A DNA stretch of 62,243 nucleotides, the filler included, from Platydemus manokwari (lineage: Eukaryota): assembly GCA_037951405.1 (NCBI GenBank). It is 5 parts of 5 records of this genome, joined end to end, with 100 filler letters (N's around TTAATTAATTAA, not from the genome) between each part and the next. Parts side by side here need not be neighbours in the genome. Positions count along the whole stretch, not along the records: positions 35,955 to 51,901 come from JBBMOY011225876.1; 4 more parts are not named here. One strand, written 5' to 3'. Below, piece after piece: positions 35,955 through 51,901 of the stretch. Under the pieces are notes generated by a model that ran no database searches, was not told where the DNA came from, and worked only from the letters and a program-made list of their open reading frames with translations. Position 1 is the stretch's first letter; each line of letters starts with the position of its first letter. The position numbers were made by a program, and so were the translations under genes.

Positions 35955-36145
35955 TTATTGTTTTCACTATTTTTATTACAGTTAAAATAACTTTATTAAT
36001 TTAAATCTTAGTATTTTTCTTTATTAAAAAACAAATTAAAATTAAACAAAAAATTAAACAAATAAAAATCAAATTAAATATTTTTTGTTTAACACTTTCT
36101 AAATAAAGTTTTTTCAAAATTTATAAAATAATTTTTTTATATCAA

Positions 36146-36177
<32 letters not shown>
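36146..36177. repeat. (AAT)n microsatellite
   Basis: About 10 consecutive AAT units. Similar tracts occur near 13537-13562 and 18514-18541. Confidence 0.85.
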
Positions 36178-36179
<2 letters not shown>

Positions 36180-38517
36180 TATATTTATCATAAAATTTTT
36201 AACAATTTATTTGTCGATATCTATCTTTTCCCATAGATGGATTAATGAAAATTCATCGCCTAATTAATTTACAATACTTTTCAATTCGTTGCCTATCTGA
36301 TTAGGTTTATTTTCAATCTAAATTTAATTAGAATTCAAGGGAATGAATATAAAAATTTTAATTATACTGAAACAACATTAGAGATGAAACGAAAACTCAT
36401 GAGTTATATATAAATGATAGAAATAAATTTTACTGTTATTTGAGATTGAGCAATAGCTGAAAATACTATGTTTCGTGGTATGATTTTCAAATTCTTGCCA
36501 CTATTCAGTCGATAAGAAGTGGTGTTGGAGGAGGGCAATGACTGGCCAGACAAACGCAATCCCATTGATGCATCAATCGTTTGCCGGCGGCGATGATTAA
36601 AAGTTGTCTTTTGGTAATCTGAATCAACAAAGCGATCAAGATAATAAATTGCATAACGGAACATCATTATAAATCACTTGTGAAATTTAGTCGATTAGTA
36701 CATATTTATATTCATATTCTGAACTTTTATGTTTATCTCTAAAAACCAATAATTGATTAGTTTTATTCTAATCGAAAATCCAGTCGTCATTTACTATATA
36801 TTACTGATAATTGATAAATTCTTATTATCATTGTTAGAGCATCTAAAGATCGCAACTAGATTGTGACTAAGGAAAACTCATAGCGTGCCAGTGTGATTTT
36901 ACAAATTTAGGACTTGTTCAAATTCGCCTTGAGGCACTTATTTTTTGTTGAAGAATGAAGAGCATATCCAACTGAAATTGAAGACCTGCAGGAAGAAATT
37001 TGTTAAAGGTTTTGCGAAGTTCTGGAGAATGGTGACATCACACACATATTATGGAATTAAGATAAATGTCAAACAAATCATAAAATTTCAATAATTTTAA
37101 TTTTGAAAATCTGTAATTTTACTAAAAAATTAATTTTTCGACTTGTGGGTTGGTAAATTCGATGTTATTTTCAATAGTAGTGAGTAAAAGAAAGGCGAAA
37201 CTGATCGACCTATTTGAAACAACAATTAAGTTTATAAATTTTCATCGTAAATGAGATAAATAAGTACAGCAACATTAATTTTAATCTCACTTGATATTGC
37301 ATCACTGAATTGCGGTTCATAAAAGGAAAGTGTGGTTTATGGGAATATATTATTCTTTCTTAGAGCATAATTGATATTATTATAAAAAGGTTTTCCGATA
37401 AAGATCTAGATGGCCTTAAGCACAATGTTTATAGTTTTTGTTAGATTAAAAACCCAATGACAAAATTGAAATCAATTTTCATTTGCCAGTCAAATAAGAT
37501 GATAGGTAGGAGAAAGCATATGGATGATATTATTAAATAAGATTAGTCGTGGAAGTTAACTTGCTACAAAAAAAGACAATTTAAATAGTTAGGAACTATT
37601 GATTACTTGATTATTATAAGGAATATATCAATATGAAATACTAATCCTAAAAACTGACAACGGTAAAGAAAAACCCAATTTGATTAAAATGATCATGAGT
37701 TCAAAATTTGCCAGTGAGCAAATTATGAAAAATAGATATAATGACTCAATCAATATTATTGGTTTATGATTCCGAACAATTAAATAATTACTGACTAGAA
37801 AAATCGAGGGATATAAGCTTTATTTCTAATTCACGTACTAATCACTGCAAATAAGAAAAAAAGGTAAAGATACAATTAAACTTGATTAACAACTGGCACT
37901 CGTACTACTCAGTATGACGTTAAATTAGCGACAAAAATGTAACCAAAACTTTACTTCCAATTAGCAGTTGACCATCTTTACAACGGTATTTATAATCGAT
38001 ATCTGAGTGTAATTTTTGTGACATGGTTGAATCACATTCTGATTTGATCTTTATATTTCCATGTTTCCAGTGAGCTTATTTGTTTTTATATATGCTGGAT
38101 TGGTCAATCCCTGTGTGCTTGTGGTTGTGTGGCTATGTCCTTTTTTCCAATTATCGTTGTGCATTTCACTCAGCTATAATTTGTTGATTGCCATGCCTGT
38201 ATGGTTGTGTATGCATGGAACTGTTTAAGTGCTAAATCAAGGGTTCCATTGTGCAAATCAGTTTTTCTTTTGTAATATTTCATCTTATTCAACAATATTG
38301 TAAATAAAGTAGTACAAAATGTAGCTGCCTATGGAAACGTCATTGATTTTATTATCAAACAATAATTATCCAATAATTAACGATAATCAATTCTTGCCAA
38401 TGTTATTAATTAATAAATTAAGAAAAATTCAATAAAGAATATCTGCTAATTATTAATGAAAACTCTCGATTTTTCAAATAATTAGAGAGATATAGAAAAA
38501 AACATCCGAATAGAAAC

Positions 38518-38694
38518 CTGCATTCTCTTCCTTGGTTGAACCGACAATGAATGATGTAGCTTTGATGGATTTTTCAGATGATTTCAAATTGGTTGCAGTA
38601 CTTAAATTTTTATTTACCCTCAAAATTGGTGCCGAAACTTTACGAATTGCCTGAGATCCAATTGATAAGCTTGTTCTAAGAGAAGAATTTCTGT
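38518..38694 (-). CDS. Candidate internal exon of an unidentified gene (Ser/Lys-rich)
   Basis: Acceptor ttttttcag, a 177-nt symmetric phase-1 open frame (RNSSLRTSLSIGSQAIRKVSAPILRVNKNLSTATNLKSSEKSIKATSFIVGSTKEENA) and donor CAG|GTTTCT. Confidence 0.45.
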
Positions 38695-41600
38695 CTGAAA
38701 AAAATTACTAAAATTATTCTCTTCTTATTTAAGATTGTCAGTTGTCTCTGATTTTATATTTTGTTATCACAATTATAATTTTCAATAATTCAATAGAAAA
38801 TCAAATTTGTTTATCTGCATTGAAAATGAAATATGAAAATTCATCACAAATTCAAACAATACGATCTATAATATCTTCTTTATAATAATCTTTGAATTAG
38901 TTTCATTACTGTCTCTTGGAATCAAATTAATTAACCGTTCCGAAATTTAAAAATTTTTGAATATATAAGTCATCTATTTGAGTTCTTGAAATAATATATT
39001 TTTATATTTCATACGTTTCGCCAAAAATTATTAAAGCCATTTTTATATAACACAATGAAACTTTAAAAATCGAAAATTATTTATCATAATAGTTGATAAA
39101 TATTTTAGACATTATATAACTACGAATAGCAATAGTGTATGACAGAGCTTTCGTCTTGTTAGGGCGTGGCTCACTACTGCAAAATCAAAAGAGTAAATCG
39201 GGAACACTGATTCCGTATTCAATAAGTGAAAAAAACTAACTTTTGCCGCGGTCAGTAGAAAAAAATACCTACTCCAAATTAAAATACTCATAAATAAGTA
39301 TATAAATTTGAATATTAAGATAATCCGAATGCTATACAATGTCAATAAATGGAAAAATTAGAAAGTGTCTTTTTATATTTTTATCAGCTTTCAAGCTGAG
39401 AACTGATCATCGGTAATTTATTCGAATAGAAATCGTTGTTGGATCTGTGGATGATTTAACGGCGATATAATTATAATCTTGATGAAATACAAGCTCAAAC
39501 ATTTATTATCTAACTGAAATTTATTTCCAGCTGTTCAAATTAATTTATGGTATCGAATGGAATTGCAAATAGAAAATGAAAGTGTATTAAGTTATCGAAC
39601 GGGGATATTGAATTTCAAAATAGTTTGGAATACCATTGAAAAATGAGAATTTCAAATTCAATACAGGTGGACAAAAAAATGGAAAGATTAAGAACCAAAT
39701 TAAGTCGTCATACAATGCCAAATATTATTCCCAGAGAATTTTAGAAACATTAAACGTGACTTTACAAAAGAAGTTGCGAAATTATAGTATCTTCACTAAA
39801 CAAATTATCTTATATTGAATTGTTCTCCTATTTTGTCTGGCTTACTTCACCAAGGAATCGCAATGGAATTGACAATAGGATTGGTTAATTATAACCGTTT
39901 ATTTATTGATTTCATATAAATTTAATGGTTTCTCAAAGGACTGTTTAAAGTTGTACTTTATTATTGCTGTGATAATAATGATAAATGTCAGCTGCTAATT
40001 CTAAATAAAAACTAATCTAAGTATATTTAATGACAATATTCACACAAATCACTTAAATTTATTCTTGTTTAAATTTAAACGTATTTTTTAAAATTTTAAA
40101 ATCCTCACAATTTTTATGAAAACGAAATTGAATTATTTTATAAAGAATCAATATCAAAGGTAAGAAAAATAAAATGTTGAGACAATCAAACATAGATAGT
40201 CACATATTTTTAAACCTTAATAAAATATCACATTTTCTTGATGAAATAATTCATTTTCAACTGTAATTTTACAGATATTCATTACGATATTCAATTTTTA
40301 ATTTTAATCTAATAACACTCTTTAGCTCACTAAAATTGATTTAAAATTTAGAAAATTTATTTCTCTCTCTCTCACACATAAATGCGAGCTGAAAGATTAT
40401 CGATTGAAATACATCAAAATACAAACTGAGATCATAGATAGATAAATAGAATTGAAATGCAAAACATTTTATTATACGTATCTCGATTGAGCTAATCATT
40501 AGAAAGAAAATAATTTTAGTAATAATAATCATAGTATAATATATAACTCGCCCCTCGTTTGCCATTTCAAGTCAGTTCAAATATCTAAACTACAAATTAC
40601 AGCTATTCTGTCTTTCTTCAATTATAATTTACCAATAAAACACACTGAAGATATTACAAGAAAAATTATAAAATAATGAAAGAAATTCTTTAGTGTTAGA
40701 AGAAAGAAACGAACTAAGCAGATTTAATAGTACAGTGTGAGCATATTCTTTGAGGTTTAATTATTTAATTATCTTCATTAAAAATAGATTTCCAATGTTC
40801 TTTTATTTCACTGAATGCAGCTCCGTACCGAATAATAACCTGAACTTCTCCTTTCTAGTCTTTGCATTCTACAGTTAATTTCTTTGTCATGCTAATGTTT
40901 TGTATTTTCCATCCATCATCTGTTCCTTTTAAAAGGCTCTATTTAGATTACTATCAATAATTTCCTCATACTTATCTTGTATAGATTTTGCTGCATTCTA
41001 TTCATCAGCTAATGAGTTTATTCCCTTAGATTGCAATGGAATGTTCAAAGAATGTTCTCAACGGAATATTCTTTATATGTCGAAGCTTCTATTTTATTTA
41101 CTTCTTATACTGTATTATTGTAAACTAGGATTGCTTCAGCGAAAATAATTAAATGCTAAAAGGCTCTCTGCTTTGCCATTTTAGCAAACTAATGATGCAT
41201 CATGATATTCTGGTTCCTTGAGAATTTTGCGTTTCCTTAAATTTTGAAAACACAGATAGGCTTTGATATTACTTTATAAAGTCACTTCATCACTTTGCTT
41301 TCAACAGATTTCAGTTTCCAGGCATATTGGAAATTTTAATAATCCAGGTATTAAGGTTTATTTCCCCCCAATGTCACTTTTTTATTAGTCTTCAGTTTTA
41401 TGCGGGTTTCAGATTACCGGGCCTAAGCCTATAATAATCTGTGAATTCTACTGACAAGACCTTCAATACAAATCTTGATTACTCGACTCACTATTGAAAT
41501 CTTAATTCCTTTCAAATTAATTTTTAAAGAAATTTACAGTTTTAAACTAAATTGATATACACTTAATATGAAATTAATAAAATAAAAAGCTCTAATTATA

Positions 41601-43949
41601 TTTTAGAATTTGTGAAATTATTTTCTGTATATCTTGATTCTGTTCTAATTTCTAATATAACTTCGAAATACTGGAGCTCCAAATTGAAATGGCTACGAAT
41701 ATTATTATTTCAAAAGTTTCAGAAACAGTTGCGACTTATATTATTTTCTATAATTATCATAAATTTAGATTCCAGTTAACAACCATTAGAGTAAAATTCT
41801 ATGTTTACTGAAGTACATAATGACTAGAACGAGCACATTAAAATGCCACTCATGAAAAATCAAATTCAATTTATTACTGTCATTAAAATTTCTTGACATT
41901 GAAAATTTTTTTAAAATTTTCGAAAATACATATGACAAATCTTAGAATTAACTAGGACATGAAATTGGAAACAATAGTGTAATTCGGATAAAGTGCAATA
42001 ATACAAGCATGATTATATTAAAGATCAAAAATAATTATGATTGAAATTTATTTTATACAGAATCAAATTTTATATAAAATTAAATCTTTAAAAATTTTAA
42101 TTCAATTTCAAAAGCTCACAATTCCCTTATTATAATTTTGTATCTATTTTAATGACCATCAGAAATTTGACTGGATTTTTGTTGCTTTATCAAGTCTAGA
42201 GTTTGTTATCAAAATTTAATTTATCAAATGGATTTTATAAGATGCAGGCTACTCTTAAATTGTATTTGTCAAATATTGCTTATCTCGAGTAAAGACCAGA
42301 CAAAATTATATAAAAATATCTCATATTTAATAATTGATCAGATTCTTATGAATTTTAATTTTTAGTGATTACGAGATAATTTTACAAATTCCATTCCAAA
42401 TATTTAAATATATGAGCTCAACAACTTGCTAGTGACCTGCCTCTCAGAGCAGAATTAAAAGATTACTTGAAATTCCATTGTCCGCACATCTATTTTGGAA
42501 TTATTATTCTTAATTTCAAATTTATTTTTTATATTTTTCAATTCCAAACCATTGACAACAAATTTGAGATAATCTTATGAACGAAAATTTCTCGTTTTAA
42601 TGGCCAGGTATATTCTACAATTCATTGGTTTCGAAATCTATTATAACAGTTGTTCCAGATGACTGCAGATTGATCAATTTAATTTGATTTTTTTTCATGC
42701 CCAATAATTTTTGTTAGCAAATATTTGAATTGAAAAGAAAATCAAATATTGATTAAAAAAATAATTTGACTTTAATCGGTATGCGTCCACTGTAAGGATT
42801 TCAAAATCAATTAACACTGAAATGATTATTTGACATAGAAGATATATTTGTATTAAAAATATATAAATAATCAATTTAATTCTCCTGTATTTTAATTAAA
42901 TATACATTTGTGGGTTGAATTTCTTATTTAGTTTTTATTTATTATTTCATGAAATAGAATCAGACAACAGCCTGACCATGTATTTGGGTTCTATTATACG
43001 ACGATCAGTGCCAGAAAATTGCAGAAGAGAATATAGATAAGTTAAAATATATTAGGCATAAATAAAGATTTATGTTATATAAAAATGTAAAGAAGTCGAT
43101 ACAGAGAATATAAAGAATAGATAAGGAGTTTCAGAAAGAATAAATAGAGTATTCGTTTTCAAGAAATGTGAAGAAAAATAAATATCCAAAGCAAGGGTGA
43201 TTAAAATTACATAATATTTAAATGATTCTTTTAAATAAAAGAATATACTTATACTAAAAATTATAAATGAGAAATTTTGTTTGTTTGAATATTTTAATTA
43301 AATAAATTTTGTGGTGGTCTTATTTCATTGCCAGTGAATATTCAATAAAATATTAGCAAGGAACATTCTATTTTGTGATAGTTTGTTAAATATGCAAGAT
43401 ATCAAATATAGATCATCGTGAGCATAACAAAACAATGACAGTCCTTTGAAATCAAAATTCATTTCGTATGAGGAAATATTTTTGCTGATATTTATTTCGT
43501 CAATCAATTCTGGTTTTTAAATACGTTAATCATCGGATTGATTTATTCAGAAATAATGCCTCTAGCATTCGTTGTCACGTTCACAATGGTTTTCTCCAAA
43601 TACTAACAATAATGATAATAGTTTTTCATTTATTGCAATCGGTGTAATAAATGGGATTTTGGAATTTTTTTTCGTTAAGTACATTTTTGTGTGATGATAT
43701 ATATTTTTTCAAAATTGATTTAAAAATCTCATAGCAAATATCACTGATATATATCTCATTTATGCAAAGAATGAAAAAGGTCTTGATTAACTATTAAGAA
43801 CACTGCGAAACTTTCTTTTAATATATGCCATTAGATCCAACAATGTGACATTATTACCATTGAACATTCAATATGTTTAAATAATTACAAAAATAGCAGT
43901 TGATAACAAAATTTTCATGAAAATAATTTTAATATTGAAGATAATTGAA

Positions 43950-44635
43950 AATAATCAATGAAAAACATCTAATGAGATAGGAGAAACTCTTGGGATCAAC
44001 AGTGGCCAGGTAATTATGCCAATTTGGCCAAGGAATATGCACGGCATGAGCTAACAGCAAAAGATTAGATAAGCCGAATTTAATTTCCCTGATTTCTATT
44101 TTTTCTAAACGAAATCAATCTAATTTTTAAAGAGATCGTTTAGAACTGACGGAAAGTGAATTTTTACTAATAATGGTAAGAGTAAAAGATCTATGGTTTA
44201 AGGTGGGGGATGTCTTTTCAACCGGTGACCTTGTCACATTACACTACGAAATGATTAGGTAATGCACCTCGTGAAAGGTAAAATGTCTGTCGAAAAGAAA
44301 TCATTTATTATCAAGATTTACCTGAAAACCAAAATAGAACGTTTATTGAGATATTTGACAACCTGTTCGAAACTTTTACAACTTATCCAACTTATTCTCA
44401 CAAGATTAAGTCGTTACAAAAAAAAATTAAAAAATAATTTAGATGGTAAAACCATTTTACCTCGGAAGACTTGAAAAATTATTTGGAACAATTTTGTAGC
44501 CAGAAACCTCAGAAGTGCTAGGAATGCGGGAGCTATATAGCTACCAGACATTTAAGATGATGAACGTAATTTAAAGTAATTAAAATCTTTATCCAGCTAC
44601 TTTCATACATGACTACCTTTATCTTCAACCAAATA
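43950..44635 (+). mobile_element. Decayed mariner transposon
   Basis: Frameshifted remnants of the TGDEKW-x-Y-x-N region (about 44130-44200) and of the C-terminus LKNNLDGKT...EDLKNYLEQF...KP (about 44425-44555). TIR-like end CTTCAACCAAATA at about 44623-44635. Confidence 0.7.
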
Positions 44636-45483
44636 GCTTACAGGATCAACTATTTCTGTCAATATCAGCCCTATACTTAATTTCACAAATAAAAGTTCCT
44701 GCTATTAATAATTCGAATAATGGTGACAGTTAATGAAGAAATTATATTGTGTTTAATATATTCCAATTTATATTTCAAGAATATCAATTTTTTGTGATAA
44801 TGATAAAATTTTATCGAAAATAAATTTCACCGAAATTACAAATACTAAAATAGTTGAAAGGAGAAAAATCAATAATGCTTGATTTTCTTCAATATTAAAT
44901 TTCATTGTAAATTATTAATTTATTTGGGAGAACAATTTTCAAAATTTTCTTTTATAAATATAAATATTTTATATTTGCCAAATCACTGATTTCATTTATT
45001 GAAACGAAGAAGAATATTTTTTTTCTCGAGAATAATCAATTTTCATTGTGATGGAAAATATATATATTTTGTTTAATACGGTGCTGTGTTTTAAAATAGA
45101 TCAAATCAATTAGTTTAAAATTGATATGTAATAAGATTGATAAGATCATTACAAATGAACGCACTGAATCGTGGAGAGAGATTAACTTGAACTCTTTCAA
45201 TTTCCGATTCAAATACAGAATCGTCTTCGAATATGCCCGGATTCTTTTCACACATTTCAATCGACGACAATCTGAAACAGGAAAAATTAGCTTGTATATG
45301 ATTATAAATTAAGGCAAACATTGATTATAAAGCTGTTTATTTTATTTAATAAATAATACTGATCAAGTTAATCGATATACGTTAAGAGATCGGACTGGAA
45401 CAACATTTAATTTAAAAGAGAACATAGAACTAAATATTAATAATAATACTGCAAATACTGGGATTGACTGTATATTTATAAAA

Positions 45484-46090
45484 TATAGGATTGAAACGAA
45501 AAACTTGTCCGATAGAAAATAATATTTATTTAACAGATAAAGACAACATGCAAATTTAGAAATATAAACAAAACATAATTTGTTTGTAAACCTGAAATGT
45601 TGTAAATAGTCACTTTTAAGGTTCACACACCTTTGCCAGCGTTCTGGAAGTTGTTTTATGCTGTTTTCATAGAAATCCACAGGTTTTGAAGCGAAACAGT
45701 TTTCCAAATAATTGCTAACATTTTCAGCGGAATGATTCGTTTTCCCACGAATTGAATTTTTCATAGGAGAAAATAGGAAATAGTCTGAAGGCGCAAGGTC
45801 TTAGGAGTATGGTGGATGCGGTATTATCGCAAAATAGAAACATATTTTGAGTTAAACGTGCCGTATGCTGTCGAGCGTTATTGTGAAGGAAATGGAACTT
45901 TTCAAAACTGTTTCCACACAACCAGCGCCTCTTTTCTCGAATAGCATCTACATGTTTGTCCAACTGATTGCAGTAAATTTCTGCATTTATGTTCTCGCAG
46001 ACACAGTACCAGTGCCAAGCACGGGGTTAATCTTCTTCTCATTCCATCTTTGCACAAAGAATACGTCATGTTTTCAAGTTGCTTCACTTA
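45484..46090 (-). mobile_element. Decayed mariner transposon, 3' half
   Basis: Minus-strand FLHNNARQHTAR (HDNARPH), a frameshifted YSxDLAPSDY, and NYLENCFASKPVDFYENSIKQLPERWQRCVN. TIR-like end TTTCGTTTCAATCCTATA. Confidence 0.88.
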
Positions 46091-47555
46091 AATTTAAAAT
46101 TTAAATGAAAATATTTTTAAAAAGTGTAATTTATTTTGCAAGTTTATGTTTTTGAAAATAATTATTTCAAACAATAAACAATCAGTAGTTTATGAAAAGT
46201 AGTGGAATTAAAAACATATTATCATTGATTTTCTGCAAACTTTACATAGATACTTAGAGAACTTGCTCTGGTATACTACTTGTTTTTATAAATCAGTAAT
46301 ATGTTAAATAAATAAAAAATTTATTGTGTAATTTTAATAACAAGTTCGATGATTGAATGAAAAATAAAAAGGCTCTGAGTTTTTATATTAAGAACTTATA
46401 TATTTATTTTTCAAATCATTTTAACAGTAAAAACTAGAGAGAGTCTTTCATTGCATTCAATAATCGGAAGAGATTGTTTTAATCAGTATATTACACGATT
46501 TGGAATGTTTTGACGACAAACATAGTTGTTTTGCAACTAAAGACGGACAAAACAGTGCTATGAGCAACATATGTTCTAGATACAATTACTACAACAATTT
46601 TCCCAGATGGATAATAATCATGTTTTGTTGACATCATGAAGTGAACCAAGACTCAGATTTATTGATTCTTTTATTTCGAGTTATGTGAACGAGAACATTT
46701 TCCCCAATGAGCCCTTGAAAATCGATATATTAAAAATGAAATACAAAATCAATTTTGTATAAATTCGTAGAATAAATTTCTTCTGAAGACATTTTGCTGA
46801 CTCAAAAATTTGAAGATATCAAATTTTTAATAATTTCCATAATTATTTCAAAGGTCTGCACTTGACATTGAAATATACTTTCAAAATTATCTATTTTATT
46901 CAGAAATTTTTTCAGAAAATTCGTGAATGTATACAAAGTAGTTTAAAAGTATCTATAAATTTAAATAATAGATTATAGTCTTGAAATTAAAATTTTAAAA
47001 CAAAACCATGAAGAAAAATAAGTTCAATTCAAAACGCATTTCAAGGTCAATAATTGAGAATAAATTAAACTAACAATATTGTGAGATTGCTGCAATAAAT
47101 TATAATAAAATAATTAAGATAAATATTTGATAATAATATCTTATAAATTCCTCATTTTAAGCTGTATCACAATGTCAGAGATTAATTAATTTTGATATTA
47201 AATGTTAGTAGTAGCCACTTCACTTAAAACTAAGGATTCAACGAAAGAAGTCATTTCTACGATTTTCTTAACTAATACAAACTAATACCAACAAATCAAA
47301 CAATTTTTAAACAAATTCAAATCCTTTTTTAAAATCTGTTTCTAGAGAGCTTTAGCTATCAATCTTAATTATAAAATATTTTAATTAATTAATAATTACT
47401 TTATATTAAATAATTTTACAAAATTTTATTTTTTATTTTGAAACTTATTAAATTATTTTAAATTGTAATTAAAAAAATTTTTATTAAAATTATTATTTTT
47501 AAATTATCATTAGTTTATTTAAATTTTCCTCACAATGTTCTCAACAATGGCATAC

Positions 47556-47690
47556 CTCTACATGAGTATGAATCGACCATTCTTGAGACTCCATTGCATC
47601 GATGGTATTGATTTTACTAGGATCATCCTCTCGCTCTTCAAGAACGACTTCTTCAGTTGATAATTCCGTTGCCACAGTGACAGATAGATC
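47556..47690 (-). CDS. Cys-less pentameric ligand-gated ion channel-like gene, third visible exon
   Basis: A 135-nt phase-0 exon (CAG...GTATGC) encodes DLSVTVATELSTEEVVLEEREDDPSKINTIDAMESQEWSIHTHVE. It continues FPFDCQ|DLSV and contains the pLGIC xEW motif. Confidence 0.85.
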
Positions 47691-49836
47691 CTGGTAAATA
47701 TAATTGATAAATACTTTAAAATTTTTTATCAACCCAATTTAAAACATTTAATCCATTGCTATTAGTTAATGTAGTACTGATAAATGATTAAAATGTTTTA
47801 TGAGCTCGATGAACTTGATTTGTACAATTTAATGATGAGCATCAATATTAAGCAATCTCTCGAATATGGTTATTAATAAGTTTTCAATTTGAGAAACTTA
47901 AACCAGATACATTGATATATCAAATCTCATGTACGCGTATCGTATACAATTTCAATATCAAATGTGTTTGTCGATTCATTGGATACATTTTTAGAATGTA
48001 TCGGAATTGTTTCGAATCGATGGGTTGCTGAAATACTAAAACAAATACCAGCAGATCACTCAAATTATATTGTAATCAATTCTGGATTTTCATGGCCTTG
48101 ATCGAATTTTAAAAATATTTCTTCTAGCAGTGAAAAGTAATGATGCTAAAACCAAGAGAAAGCAAATAAGTGATTTAGGATTTCATTGAAAAAATCAACT
48201 TTGATATTTGGAGAGTACTTTGCCGGTTTTGAACCATTCACAATTTTAACAAGTAAACCACCTTGGACTTCATCGATATCTTACAGAATCTGATTGGCAA
48301 ATCTGTTTCATTTTCACTCACAAATTCATTTACTACTTGGCCATAGGTTCCTTAATAATTTCATTTCCATTTCATATAACCGTATGGATTACACGTATTA
48401 CTTTCTGACATTGGCTGAATAAATATGAAATCAATTAAAAGAATCTTCCAATTTGTCGCGACGATAATTAGAAATTATCTGTTTTTCATTCATTTTCTAT
48501 TATCAATGTGATACTGAAGTTTCAAGTTATTGTTCTCTGTTATTATAAAATGTTAACGAAGAAAAGGTTTCTCTCTTCAAATCAAGTTTGGGATGTTTAT
48601 TTGAATGATTATTTAAGAACTTTTAATTGTTATCAAAAATGACAACATTACTAGTAGCAATTTATTCGATTGCCGAAATAAAACAAAATTAAATAATGGC
48701 TACACAAATAACGAATTTGACAAAATAAGTAGTGACAAATATAAGTTTATAAAGTCACTACATTAAAAAAAATCAATATTTATTATATAAGATTTCTACA
48801 CGACGTGGTGGGGAAATTCATCACATCGACTACAAAATTGATTACACGGGTTTTATTAATGGTTTCCGAATGTGGATGAGAAATCTATCTGCAATGCAAT
48901 TTTTGTGCTGACTATTCAAATTCGATTATGCCAAGATTGCTTTTTGAATTTGTTTTGAGTTGATGAATTTTTGACGATGGTAGCTTGAAGAGAATTTAAA
49001 AGTTTGATGTTGTCGAAGTGATTGTGCCAAAAGAAAGGAATATATCAATTTTTAATGAGCTTTTGTCGGATGTCATTGATTCAAAATCTGTGCGAATGGC
49101 GAATGAATTTGAAGATGATGTTGTTAACACCAATATTGGTAGTCGAATTTGTTTCATTGTCGAAGTTTCAACTTTGAATTTCATATCGCGTTTCCATCGA
49201 TTATAATGTAACGGCACGTCGATTCGCGATTGCAGAAACCAATTTATGTACTTAACTGGAAAGGTTAGGTACAAATTGATAATTATCTTATTGGTATTCC
49301 GGTTAAAACTGCAGTTGGCTCATTTGTGGTAATCTCTACTGGGTAATAGTCCGAATCTGAGTTAGGGTGTGTTCAATTTGTTTTCATCGAATTTGCAGGT
49401 GAAGTTGAGAAGTGATGTTGTTTAGTGTCTGAGAGAATGCCAAAATTGTGATATTGCAGCACTATGGAGGTTATTGTTGGTTGGTATGGGGTCGACATGT
49501 TGTATAGGGTTCTTTTAATAAGATAACGATAACTATTGAAGAAATAAATTCAAAGTGTTAATTATTTATTCCTACAAGTTTTAGAATTATATCATTGTCG
49601 TAATCTATTGGGATCCCTAACATACCAATTTTGATGACATCCAATATAGTTTCATATCGTGATGCTGTTCAAATTTGAATCTTAACTGATTTATATTTTT
49701 CGAAGTGCGGTGCATGTCAAAATTTTTAACAAGATCAAATGATATTTTTAAATCAATAATGTTTATCTCCTAGTATAAAAAAAGTTAAATAATGATTAAT
49801 TAAAGTAAGAAAATATTAGTTGAAAGTATAAAGTAC

Positions 49837-50028
49837 CTGACAGTCAAAAGGAAATTGCATAAGTTCCAAGGTTTCATGAAAAACAGCTCGCATTCGCCTC
49901 TTCTGTAATACATACGCTATTCCATTTGTTTCAGGATAGATCACTTCTAGCGAGATATTATCCTTATTTTCTCTTGCAAGATTTTCTATGTATAGCTTTG
50001 GATTCCAAATTGTTTTGAAGTCAACACT
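49837..50028 (-). CDS. Cys-less pLGIC-like gene, second visible exon (contains the Pro-loop)
   Basis: A 192-nt phase-0 exon (AAG...GTACTT) encodes SVDFKTIWNPKLYIENL...KRRMRAVFHETLELMQFPFDCQ, with the WxPxLxxxN and LxxFPFDxQ motifs. Confidence 0.9.
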
Positions 50029-51027
50029 CTTGAAATAACAAAAATAATTGACTAGGACATTGTATGACATGTAAAATATAAAGGTCATTTATCAATTTAA
50101 GATCTAAGGTTTAAGATTGATTACTAATATTTATCTTCGCGAGGAATTTGCACTGATGTCGATATTATTAATACCAATAAAATTAATTATTAAATTCAAG
50201 TTAAAAATGTTTAATTTCAAAAGCACAAACTTAAATTAGAGAAAATATTTTTATAGGTTTGAATTATGTTTAAAATAATTACGGAAATACAAGGTTCTAT
50301 CATCGAATTTATTACAGGAAAAATTTGCAGACATTCATTGAATATTTAGAAATGGCATTTGTTGTATCCAATAAAATTTATTGACTTTAATAAATTAAAA
50401 TTGTTTGGATTATCGATTCTTTTATAAGTTTGTTTTTTCAATTTCAACCGTGTCACCAGGTTTTAATCTTTAAGAGTTTTATAAAAATAGAAAACTGTCT
50501 CAAAGCCAATTATTTCTCTAATATAAACATTCGAATCCACTTGAATTATTGACAAGGAGCACATGTTGAACTTCTTGATGATAATTCACCAAGATAAATC
50601 CTTGGCCGAAATATCATTAGGCTTTAAGCCTAGCATTTCTTTTCTTGGGATAATGAAAAGAGGTATACCAGAGGTATATCTCAAATCTTAGATTAACTTG
50701 CAAATAAAAGTTGAAACGTGCTCCATGGTGTTGATGAAAGAGTAGAGAGAGATATGTTATCGAGTTGTCGCGAATTGAGTTGAAATTAGTATTAATGAAA
50801 ATGTTGAACATTTTAAAACTAAAAATGAGGGTTCTAAAAGACTATGTTATTGAATAAATTACAGCAAATTTGTATTAATAACCGAAGATTGGATTTCGAG
50901 CCTATTCAACATTAAAATGAAATACTCGGTTGTGATTTAATATCAATTCGATATCAGAATATTTTTACAATGATAAAAGAAGCTAAGAATAATTTTTTCG
51001 CTTATTTATGAATTTGATAAAAAATAC

Positions 51028-51159
51028 CTTTAAATCTGTTACGTGGTCTAAAAGAGGTTCCCTCCACTTCGCTTGAAGGAATACTTCGGCATAATACTGT
51101 TCATTTACTGTGTCTATGTTGTAAATCTTGAGAAAGACGCACCTTAAATATACATGCAC
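51028..51159 (-). CDS. Cys-less pLGIC-like gene, first visible exon
   Basis: A 132-nt phase-0 exon (CAG...GTATTT) encodes VHVYLRCVFLKIYNIDTVNEQYYAEVFLQAKWREPLLDHVTDLK, the beta1-beta2 IxxIDxxxxxY...WxxPxL pattern. Confidence 0.88.
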
Positions 51160-51901
51160 CTGAAATAATATAAAATATACAGTACAATATGTCATACAAT
51201 TTATCAAATTCCCCAATTATTCAACTGTGCTGACTCGGGTTAACTAGATGTTAAAATCTTTTTGAAAAAACAAAAGATAAACATTTATTCAATTGGGGCT
51301 AGGTTATTTATCATCTAAATATATCAAAGAAACCCATATCACAAAAATGAAGATAGATTGATCCAATTAAAATTAAAAGACTTCCAAAGACTTTATAAAT
51401 TAAATATAATTCTCGAAAGAATATGAAGCTAGCAAATTAAAGCGAAACGGTAACTAAAAATAAAAAAAATCATTAAGAATTTATTTTCTTTGTTATAATG
51501 TAACAATCATGACGATAAACTGCAATCTTTAGATAAAATTAAACCATTTTGACACGTGTTTGTCAGGTCATTCATCATTGTCATATACAATCAATATTCT
51601 TTGGAATTTAAGCTTATTAATGGTTGGTTTCTTCTTGGAAAAATTCCTTACTAAATTCCTCATTTTATTAAAGTTACATGATATCTTTTTCCCCAAAGAA
51701 ATTTAATTATATCAACCATATTGAATTGTTTATATTTTTCTGATCTCATTGTTTTATTTGTAATCTATGGGTATTCACAAATGGAAATTTTATAATTTTT
51801 TATTGATATTGAACGAAATAAATTATTATTGGAATTTCAATTAATGATTATATTATAAATATTGATACTAAACTAATTGATATTAAGCAAGTTCAACAAT
51901 A

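Follow-up and report, generated by a model that had tools for sequence, protein, structure and literature searches.

Three exons of a probable Cys-less pentameric ligand-gated ion channel gene in Platydemus manokwari, and the membrane topology of its family

Background

Three short open segments in the genome of Platydemus manokwari raise the question of what kind of ligand-gated channel may be encoded where both cysteines of the characteristic loop are missing, and whether the segments are the beginning of an intact gene or all that is left of one. They lie at 47556-51159 of the window, by which we mean the whole stretch of DNA analysed (62,243 nucleotides including filler; assembly GCA_037951405.1), on the piece that occupies positions 35955-51901 (JBBMOY011225876.1), with 27 % G+C. 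A reading of this locus made from the sequence alone, referred to below as the sequence-only reading, had proposed a metazoan Cys-less (Pro-loop) pentameric ligand-gated ion channel (pLGIC) homolog, and an orphan channel subunit. The comparisons reported here support the view that the exons belong to this metazoan Cys-less pLGIC clade and are of its flatworm type. Since the clade was already described in 2016 and 2023, flatworms included, the gene is one more, partial member of it.

A metazoan Cys-less clade, found mostly in Lophotrochozoa including platyhelminths, was described by Jaiteh, Taly and Henin 2016 (PMC4795631), who noted that the first Cys is replaced by a polar residue and the second by a hydrophobic one. 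A0A5K4FCR6 was named as an example of the schistosome 'Cys-less' ligand-gated ion channel (LGIC) clade by Johnson 2023 (PMC9874803), where the clade is described as absent from humans and of interest as an anthelmintic target, and where planarian homologues were localised to mechanosensory neurons, their knock-down leading to seizure-like movements.

Exon structure and the Pro-loop

Read directly from the sequence, the three segments are open on the minus strand over a total of 153 codons, all of them in phase 0 and bounded by AG acceptors and GT donors. Exon A (51028..51159, 44 codons; acceptor ...tttcag/G, donor AAG/gtattt, the slash marking the exon border) encodes strands beta1-beta2 of the ligand-binding domain and includes two conserved motifs, DT..E and KWREP.LD, the latter carrying the loop D Trp; its first codon, GTG, is internal and is read as Val. 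Intron 1 (50029..51027, minus strand; 999 bases, GT-AG, phase 0) leads to exon B (49837..50028, minus strand, 64 codons; acceptor ...ttcaag/A, donor CAG/gtactt), which contains loop A (IWNPKLYIEN), beta3-beta6 and the start of the Pro-loop, and ends in ETLELMQFPFDCQ. Intron 2 (47691..49836, minus strand; 2146 bases, again GT-AG and phase 0) divides the Pro-loop between FPFDCQ and DLSV. Exon C (47556..47690, minus strand, 45 codons; acceptor ...taccag/G, donor GAG/gtatgc) comprises the end of the Pro-loop with the Leu of the second Cys position, beta7, a loop B region which in the alignment has no Trp, and the conserved QEW of beta8. Together, exons A-C account for strands beta1 to beta8, that is, the first two thirds of a pLGIC ligand-binding domain. 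Contigs of one public DNA run span all three exons with zero differences.

The peptide read across the junction of exons B and C is FHETLELMQFPFDCQ/DLSV. FPFD, with the invariant Pro of the beta6-beta7 loop, closes exon B and is invariant in the family alignment. Glu, seven residues before FPFD, takes the first Cys position and Leu, four residues after FPFD, takes the second, while the sole Cys of the loop sits inside FPFDCQ; the C-x13-C pattern of canonical Cys-loop receptors is thus absent from this loop at both of its positions. In coordinates, codon number, phase and loop sequence, as well as in the replacement of both cysteines, the sequence-only reading and direct inspection agree. As in ELIC and GLIC, no disulfide would fix the beta6-beta7 loop, in which Glu and Leu flank the conserved FPFD.

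Recognition of the ligand-binding domain

Every search was run exon by exon. The Pfam model Neur_chan_LBD (PF02931), for which the cut-off is 26 bits, matched exon A with 13.2 bits (profile 27-63) and exon B with 16.1 bits (profile 77-138), both below the cut-off and collinear with each other, and exon C had no Pfam match. When 1.84 billion representatives were searched by HMMER with exon B, 235 proteins reached E<=1e-3; their identities to the exon were 35-54 %, and the long proteins among them carry Neur_chan_LBD together with Neur_chan_memb (PF02932). On searching the piece by tblastn with 29 long relatives, all three exons were matched in order and at the boundaries given in the sequence-only reading; the nearest full-length relative, a protein of 358 aa (UniParc UPI00060556C5, hereafter P0002), aligned at its residues 16-57 with exon A at 74 % identity and at 120-166 with exon C at 62 % identity.

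A family hidden Markov model (HMM), built from 20 relatives, was run on all six-frame stop-to-stop segments of the piece. Only exons A-C were matched, and in collinear order: exon A with 63.4 bits (E 8.5e-19, HMM positions 44-86), exon B with 85.7 bits (E 1.4e-25, positions 90-155) and exon C with 46.6 bits (E 1e-13, positions 152-199), the next best segment in the piece reaching 4.9 bits. This collinear three-exon match is far beyond chance. Given that the relatives behind the model themselves pass PF02931, and that exons A and B give collinear Neur_chan_LBD matches, the earlier identification of a pLGIC ligand-binding domain holds. In an alignment with 16 relatives, the exons keep 41 of the 46 family-conserved residues (positions at least 80 % conserved); all five departures are conservative, P0002 sharing at least two.

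Relationship to known Cys-less channels

P0002 is 70, 54 and 60 % identical to exons A, B and C, respectively, in the alignment. The closest relatives, which are 40-74 % identical per exon, are all members of the invertebrate Cys-less clade, among them P0195, which is the published S. mansoni A0A5K4FCR6. The affiliation offered by the sequence-only reading is therefore upheld and, judged by its closest relatives, which are Cys-less and not canonical, the gene would not fall inside a well-characterised Cys-loop clade. P0002 has its own relatives among trematode proteins (Schistosoma, Opisthorchis and Fasciola), together with one from the monogenean Cichlidogyrus; farther relatives are mollusc, annelid, nemertean and rotifer proteins. 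The Glu and Leu of exons B and C fit the polar and hydrophobic pattern of Jaiteh 2016, and the same is seen in all members inspected.

Intron positions provide a further line of comparison. The exon boundary just before the WNP motif in Fasciola (L006) coincides with the site of intron 1, that of intron 2 is matched both in Fasciola (FPFDVQ/DLSV) and in Cichlidogyrus (L005; FPFDCQ/DLSI), and the donor site of exon C corresponds to the boundaries HVDV/ of Fasciola and HVDI/ of Cichlidogyrus. These positions, conserved in two other species, lend indirect backing to the predicted splicing of exons A-C.

At the level of structure, the family profile finds ELIC best among PDB entries (1e-26), followed by GABA-A gamma2/beta and glycine receptors (1e-26 to 1e-20). 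The AlphaFold2 model of P0002 consists of a beta-sandwich and four helices (predicted local distance difference test score, pLDDT, 86.5; predicted template modelling score, pTM, 0.79) and resembles GABA-A and Gly receptor chains with E 1e-21 and template modelling (TM) scores of 0.66-0.74.

Two groups of sequences met among the relatives deserve mention. P0200 and P0242-P0244 are family members filed in EukProt under the apicomplexan Siedleckia nematoides, a parasite of polychaetes; their grouping with animal sequences makes contamination by the annelid host seem likelier than a protist origin. P0001, P0003 and P0007 are models with two ligand-binding units (a Pinctada protein of 592 aa, and a 1034-aa model with a weak Exo_endo_phos match among them) and look like fused tandem paralogues or retroelement fusions rather than true two-domain proteins.

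Inferred features of the complete subunit

The orphan channel subunit of the sequence-only reading is supported, with the reservation that only the ligand-binding strands beta1-beta8 are seen in the piece and the channel part is drawn from relatives. By analogy with full-length relatives, a complete subunit would add loop C and beta9-beta10. Four helices would follow, with an ELIC-like M2 which in relatives has R0', Q2', T6', L9', A13' and F16' in the position numbering used for ELIC M2. Also expected, again as in relatives, would be an ELIC-like M2-M3 loop, a linker of 13 residues between M3 and M4 and, after M4, a helical tail of basic character; five such subunits would presumably form the pore. 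The M2-M3 loop of the family is LPKISYLTYLDKY as against LPRLPYTTYIDQ in ELIC.

The residues preceding M2 vary among members. In schistosome members a Glu, already noted by Johnson 2023 (PMC9874803), stands two residues before the M2 Arg, whereas most others have Gln-Asn and P0002 has Tyr-Gly, with neither acidic nor Pro-Ala filter residues before M2. Because these residues differ among members, ion selectivity is not readable from the sequence.

Intact gene or remnant, and other explanations

The 11.6 kb downstream of exon C on the minus strand (35955..47555) may belong to a long intron 3 or else mark where a truncated gene ends. We consider it reasonably probable that exons A-C are the 5' part of an intact gene, with an intron of more than 11.6 kb between them and a next exon that lies past the piece's lower edge, because the corresponding intron in Fasciola measures 22 kb, the three exons seem to be under constraint and the piece goes no farther than 35955. 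In the Fasciola orthologue (JXXN02002049.1), 401 codons occupy 58 kb and the introns measure 11, 9.9, 22, 2.8 and 10.8 kb, the counterpart of intron 3 being the longest of that gene; with introns of such length, the absence of an exon from a 16-kb piece is weak evidence in flatworms. The contrary explanation is that of a truncated gene or pseudogene remnant, in which only the first three coding exons survive, whether by rearrangement, transposon-mediated deletion or misassembly, and no working subunit is made. This is a possibility to be taken seriously, albeit one that we doubt, in view of the three open exons, their canonical splice sites, the 41 of 46 conserved residues retained, and the long Fasciola intron set against a piece that ends where it does.

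Several observations nevertheless weigh against our reading of an intact Cys-less channel gene, and most of them speak for a remnant. Exons for beta9, loop C, beta10 and M1-M4 are absent from the piece on both strands, by tblastn with the 29 relatives and by the family HMM with filters off, and HMM positions 200-375 find nothing above noise there; the exon that comes next in relatives is highly conserved, has about 95 codons and comprises beta9, loop C, beta10, M1, M2 and the LTYLDK motif. Introns 1 and 2, of only 1.0 and 2.1 kb, favour truncation. The downstream stretch includes a degraded mariner-like transposase remnant (~45366-46026, minus strand, in two frames; NARQHTA, DLAPSDYFLF), which scores 18.1 bits with Pfam Transposase_1, below the cut-off of 24, and shows a depth of ~90 at 46000-46196, consistent with a repeat family. 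It also includes, adjoining exon C, a high-copy AT-rich low-complexity repeat (~47180-47575) with two short tandem arrays; contig depth here is 238-542 as against ~13 elsewhere, with many loose ends and alternative joints, and this repeat is likely a weak point of the assembly. Reading through the donor of exon C meets a stop after 4 codons, which leaves an incomplete beta-sandwich, and a search of public sequencing runs found one DNA run with the sequence and no RNA run. Upstream, the region 51160..51901 (minus strand) is expected to contain the first coding exon and the start codon, yet no start codon was identified in it, the N-terminal part of the family being too variable to detect. The assignment to the family is itself touched by the phmmer search of each exon against PDB sequences, which gave nothing even at E 10: with the exons singly below the Pfam cut-off and without a PDB match, membership rests on intermediate relatives.

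Much less probable is a canonical anionic or cationic Cys-loop receptor with secondary loss of its cysteines, in the manner of nematode lgc-34 or a Dirofilaria immitis subunit. Such losses do exist (PMC9874803, PMC4795631), and the family profile scores GABA-A gamma2/beta about equal to ELIC. However, the relatives of exon B that were inspected, among 150 listed, are all of the Cys-less family with no canonical receptor; all 64 profile matches likewise belong to that family and have Glu at the first Cys position; and exon B reaches 85.7 bits with the family HMM as opposed to 16.1 with the general Pfam model. Hardly credible, lastly, is a soluble AChBP-like binding protein consisting of nothing but the ligand-binding domain. 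It would agree with a piece devoid of membrane exons, but exon C stops before beta9-beta10 and loop C and so leaves the domain incomplete, its donor is the conserved intron site of relatives that continue to M1-M4, and no signal peptide exon was identified.

Other features of the piece may be recorded here. A minus-strand open reading frame at 46652-46494, which resembles a pre-M1 segment by eye, gave a noise score against the family HMM. Two candidate start codons, both unsupported, are an in-frame ATG at 51195, within the polypyrimidine tract before exon A, and an ATG at 51663, for which phase-0 GT donors are possible after 51652 or 51589. An (AAT)12 microsatellite is located at 36146-36181.

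Membrane topology of the family

Features bearing on topology were drawn from L001-L004 and from P0011, P0066, P0106, P0110, P0132, P0136, P0147 and P0191-P0230. In about 50 members no signal peptide or hydrophobic segment was found before the ligand-binding domain, with one exception, a Schistosoma rodhaini model whose N terminus is hydrophobic. In four transcript contigs that contain no introns, in-frame stops precede the start codon, and the N termini are therefore complete. The N-terminal extensions are hydrophilic and 16-400 residues in length; a conserved amphipathic helix motif (~S-L-x-x-A-I-x-x-L) is seen in the extension of many members. M3 and M4 are joined by a loop of median length 13 residues, and the tail after M4 has a median of 55, the latter being basic with a conserved RRRxMxxKDxE motif and modelled by AlphaFold2, for P0002, as one continuous helix with M4. 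On counting Lys and Arg in family members, with pre-M1, M2-M3 and the first 25 tail residues taken as the ligand-binding side, the mean is 12.8 on that side and 4.0 on the other, a bias present in 60 of 61 members. Neither a glycosylation sequon nor a Cys pair is conserved in the domain of family members.

Membrane proteins generally obey the positive-inside rule, and a large N-terminal domain needs a signal sequence for its translocation. The lack of a signal peptide and, by this rule, the charge bias point to a cytosolic ligand-binding domain. On these family features taken together, we tentatively raise the possibility, about which we remain more doubtful than convinced, that the whole clade, the window gene included, consists of 'inside-out' pLGICs, with the ligand-binding domain, the M2-M3 loop and the C-terminal tail all cytosolic (N-in/C-in). 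Such a channel would be gated by an intracellular ligand or condition. The evidence falls short of proof, and the large ectodomain of pro-neuregulin is translocated without a signal peptide. No discussion of an inverted topology was found in literature searches.

To our knowledge, the clade is one of orphan channels that have been catalogued and never electrophysiologically characterised. If the inside-out arrangement were true, the clade would provide the first pLGICs whose ligand-binding domain is cytosolic, and ligand screens would need inside-out patches, not bath application to oocytes. The window gene is of modest interest alone, and the larger point is the topology of its family.

Comparison with known systems

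The gene is most readily compared with P0002, with which it shares the FPFDCQDLSV loop, two residues that depart from the family consensus, Tyr in KIY and Ala in K/R-A-x-F, and the lack of an insertion between beta2 and beta3. Unlike the window piece, P0002 continues through beta9-beta10 and M1-M4 to a 33-residue tail. The trematode Cys-less LGICs (P0195; Fasciola hepatica THD23607, which is P0051) resemble the window gene in Glu/Leu, FPFD(C/V)QDLSV, QEW and intron positions, although identity is only 40-54 %, and they carry an insertion of ~30 residues after beta2 and N-terminal extensions of 300-400 residues. With respect to the clade of Jaiteh 2016, the taxa are the same (molluscs, annelids and platyhelminths), with a nemertean and rotifers added here, and nothing sets the window gene apart.

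Canonical GABA-A, glycine and nicotinic receptors share the fold, as judged from the profile and the P0002 model, together with WxP in loop A, FPFD and the pre-M1 Arg. In contrast to them, the family, as seen in the relatives, lacks C-x13-C, the loop B Trp, a signal peptide and the large intracellular domain between M3 and M4. ELIC and GLIC, on the other hand, resemble the family in the absence of the loop disulfide and in a very short M3-M4 linker, and ELIC is in addition close in sequence over M2 and the M2-M3 loop (RLQxSFTLxLT...LPxxxYxTYxD). What distinguishes the animal family from ELIC, which ends soon after M4, are its introns, an N-terminal extension that is hydrophilic and lacks a signal peptide, and a conserved basic tail of ~55 residues after M4.

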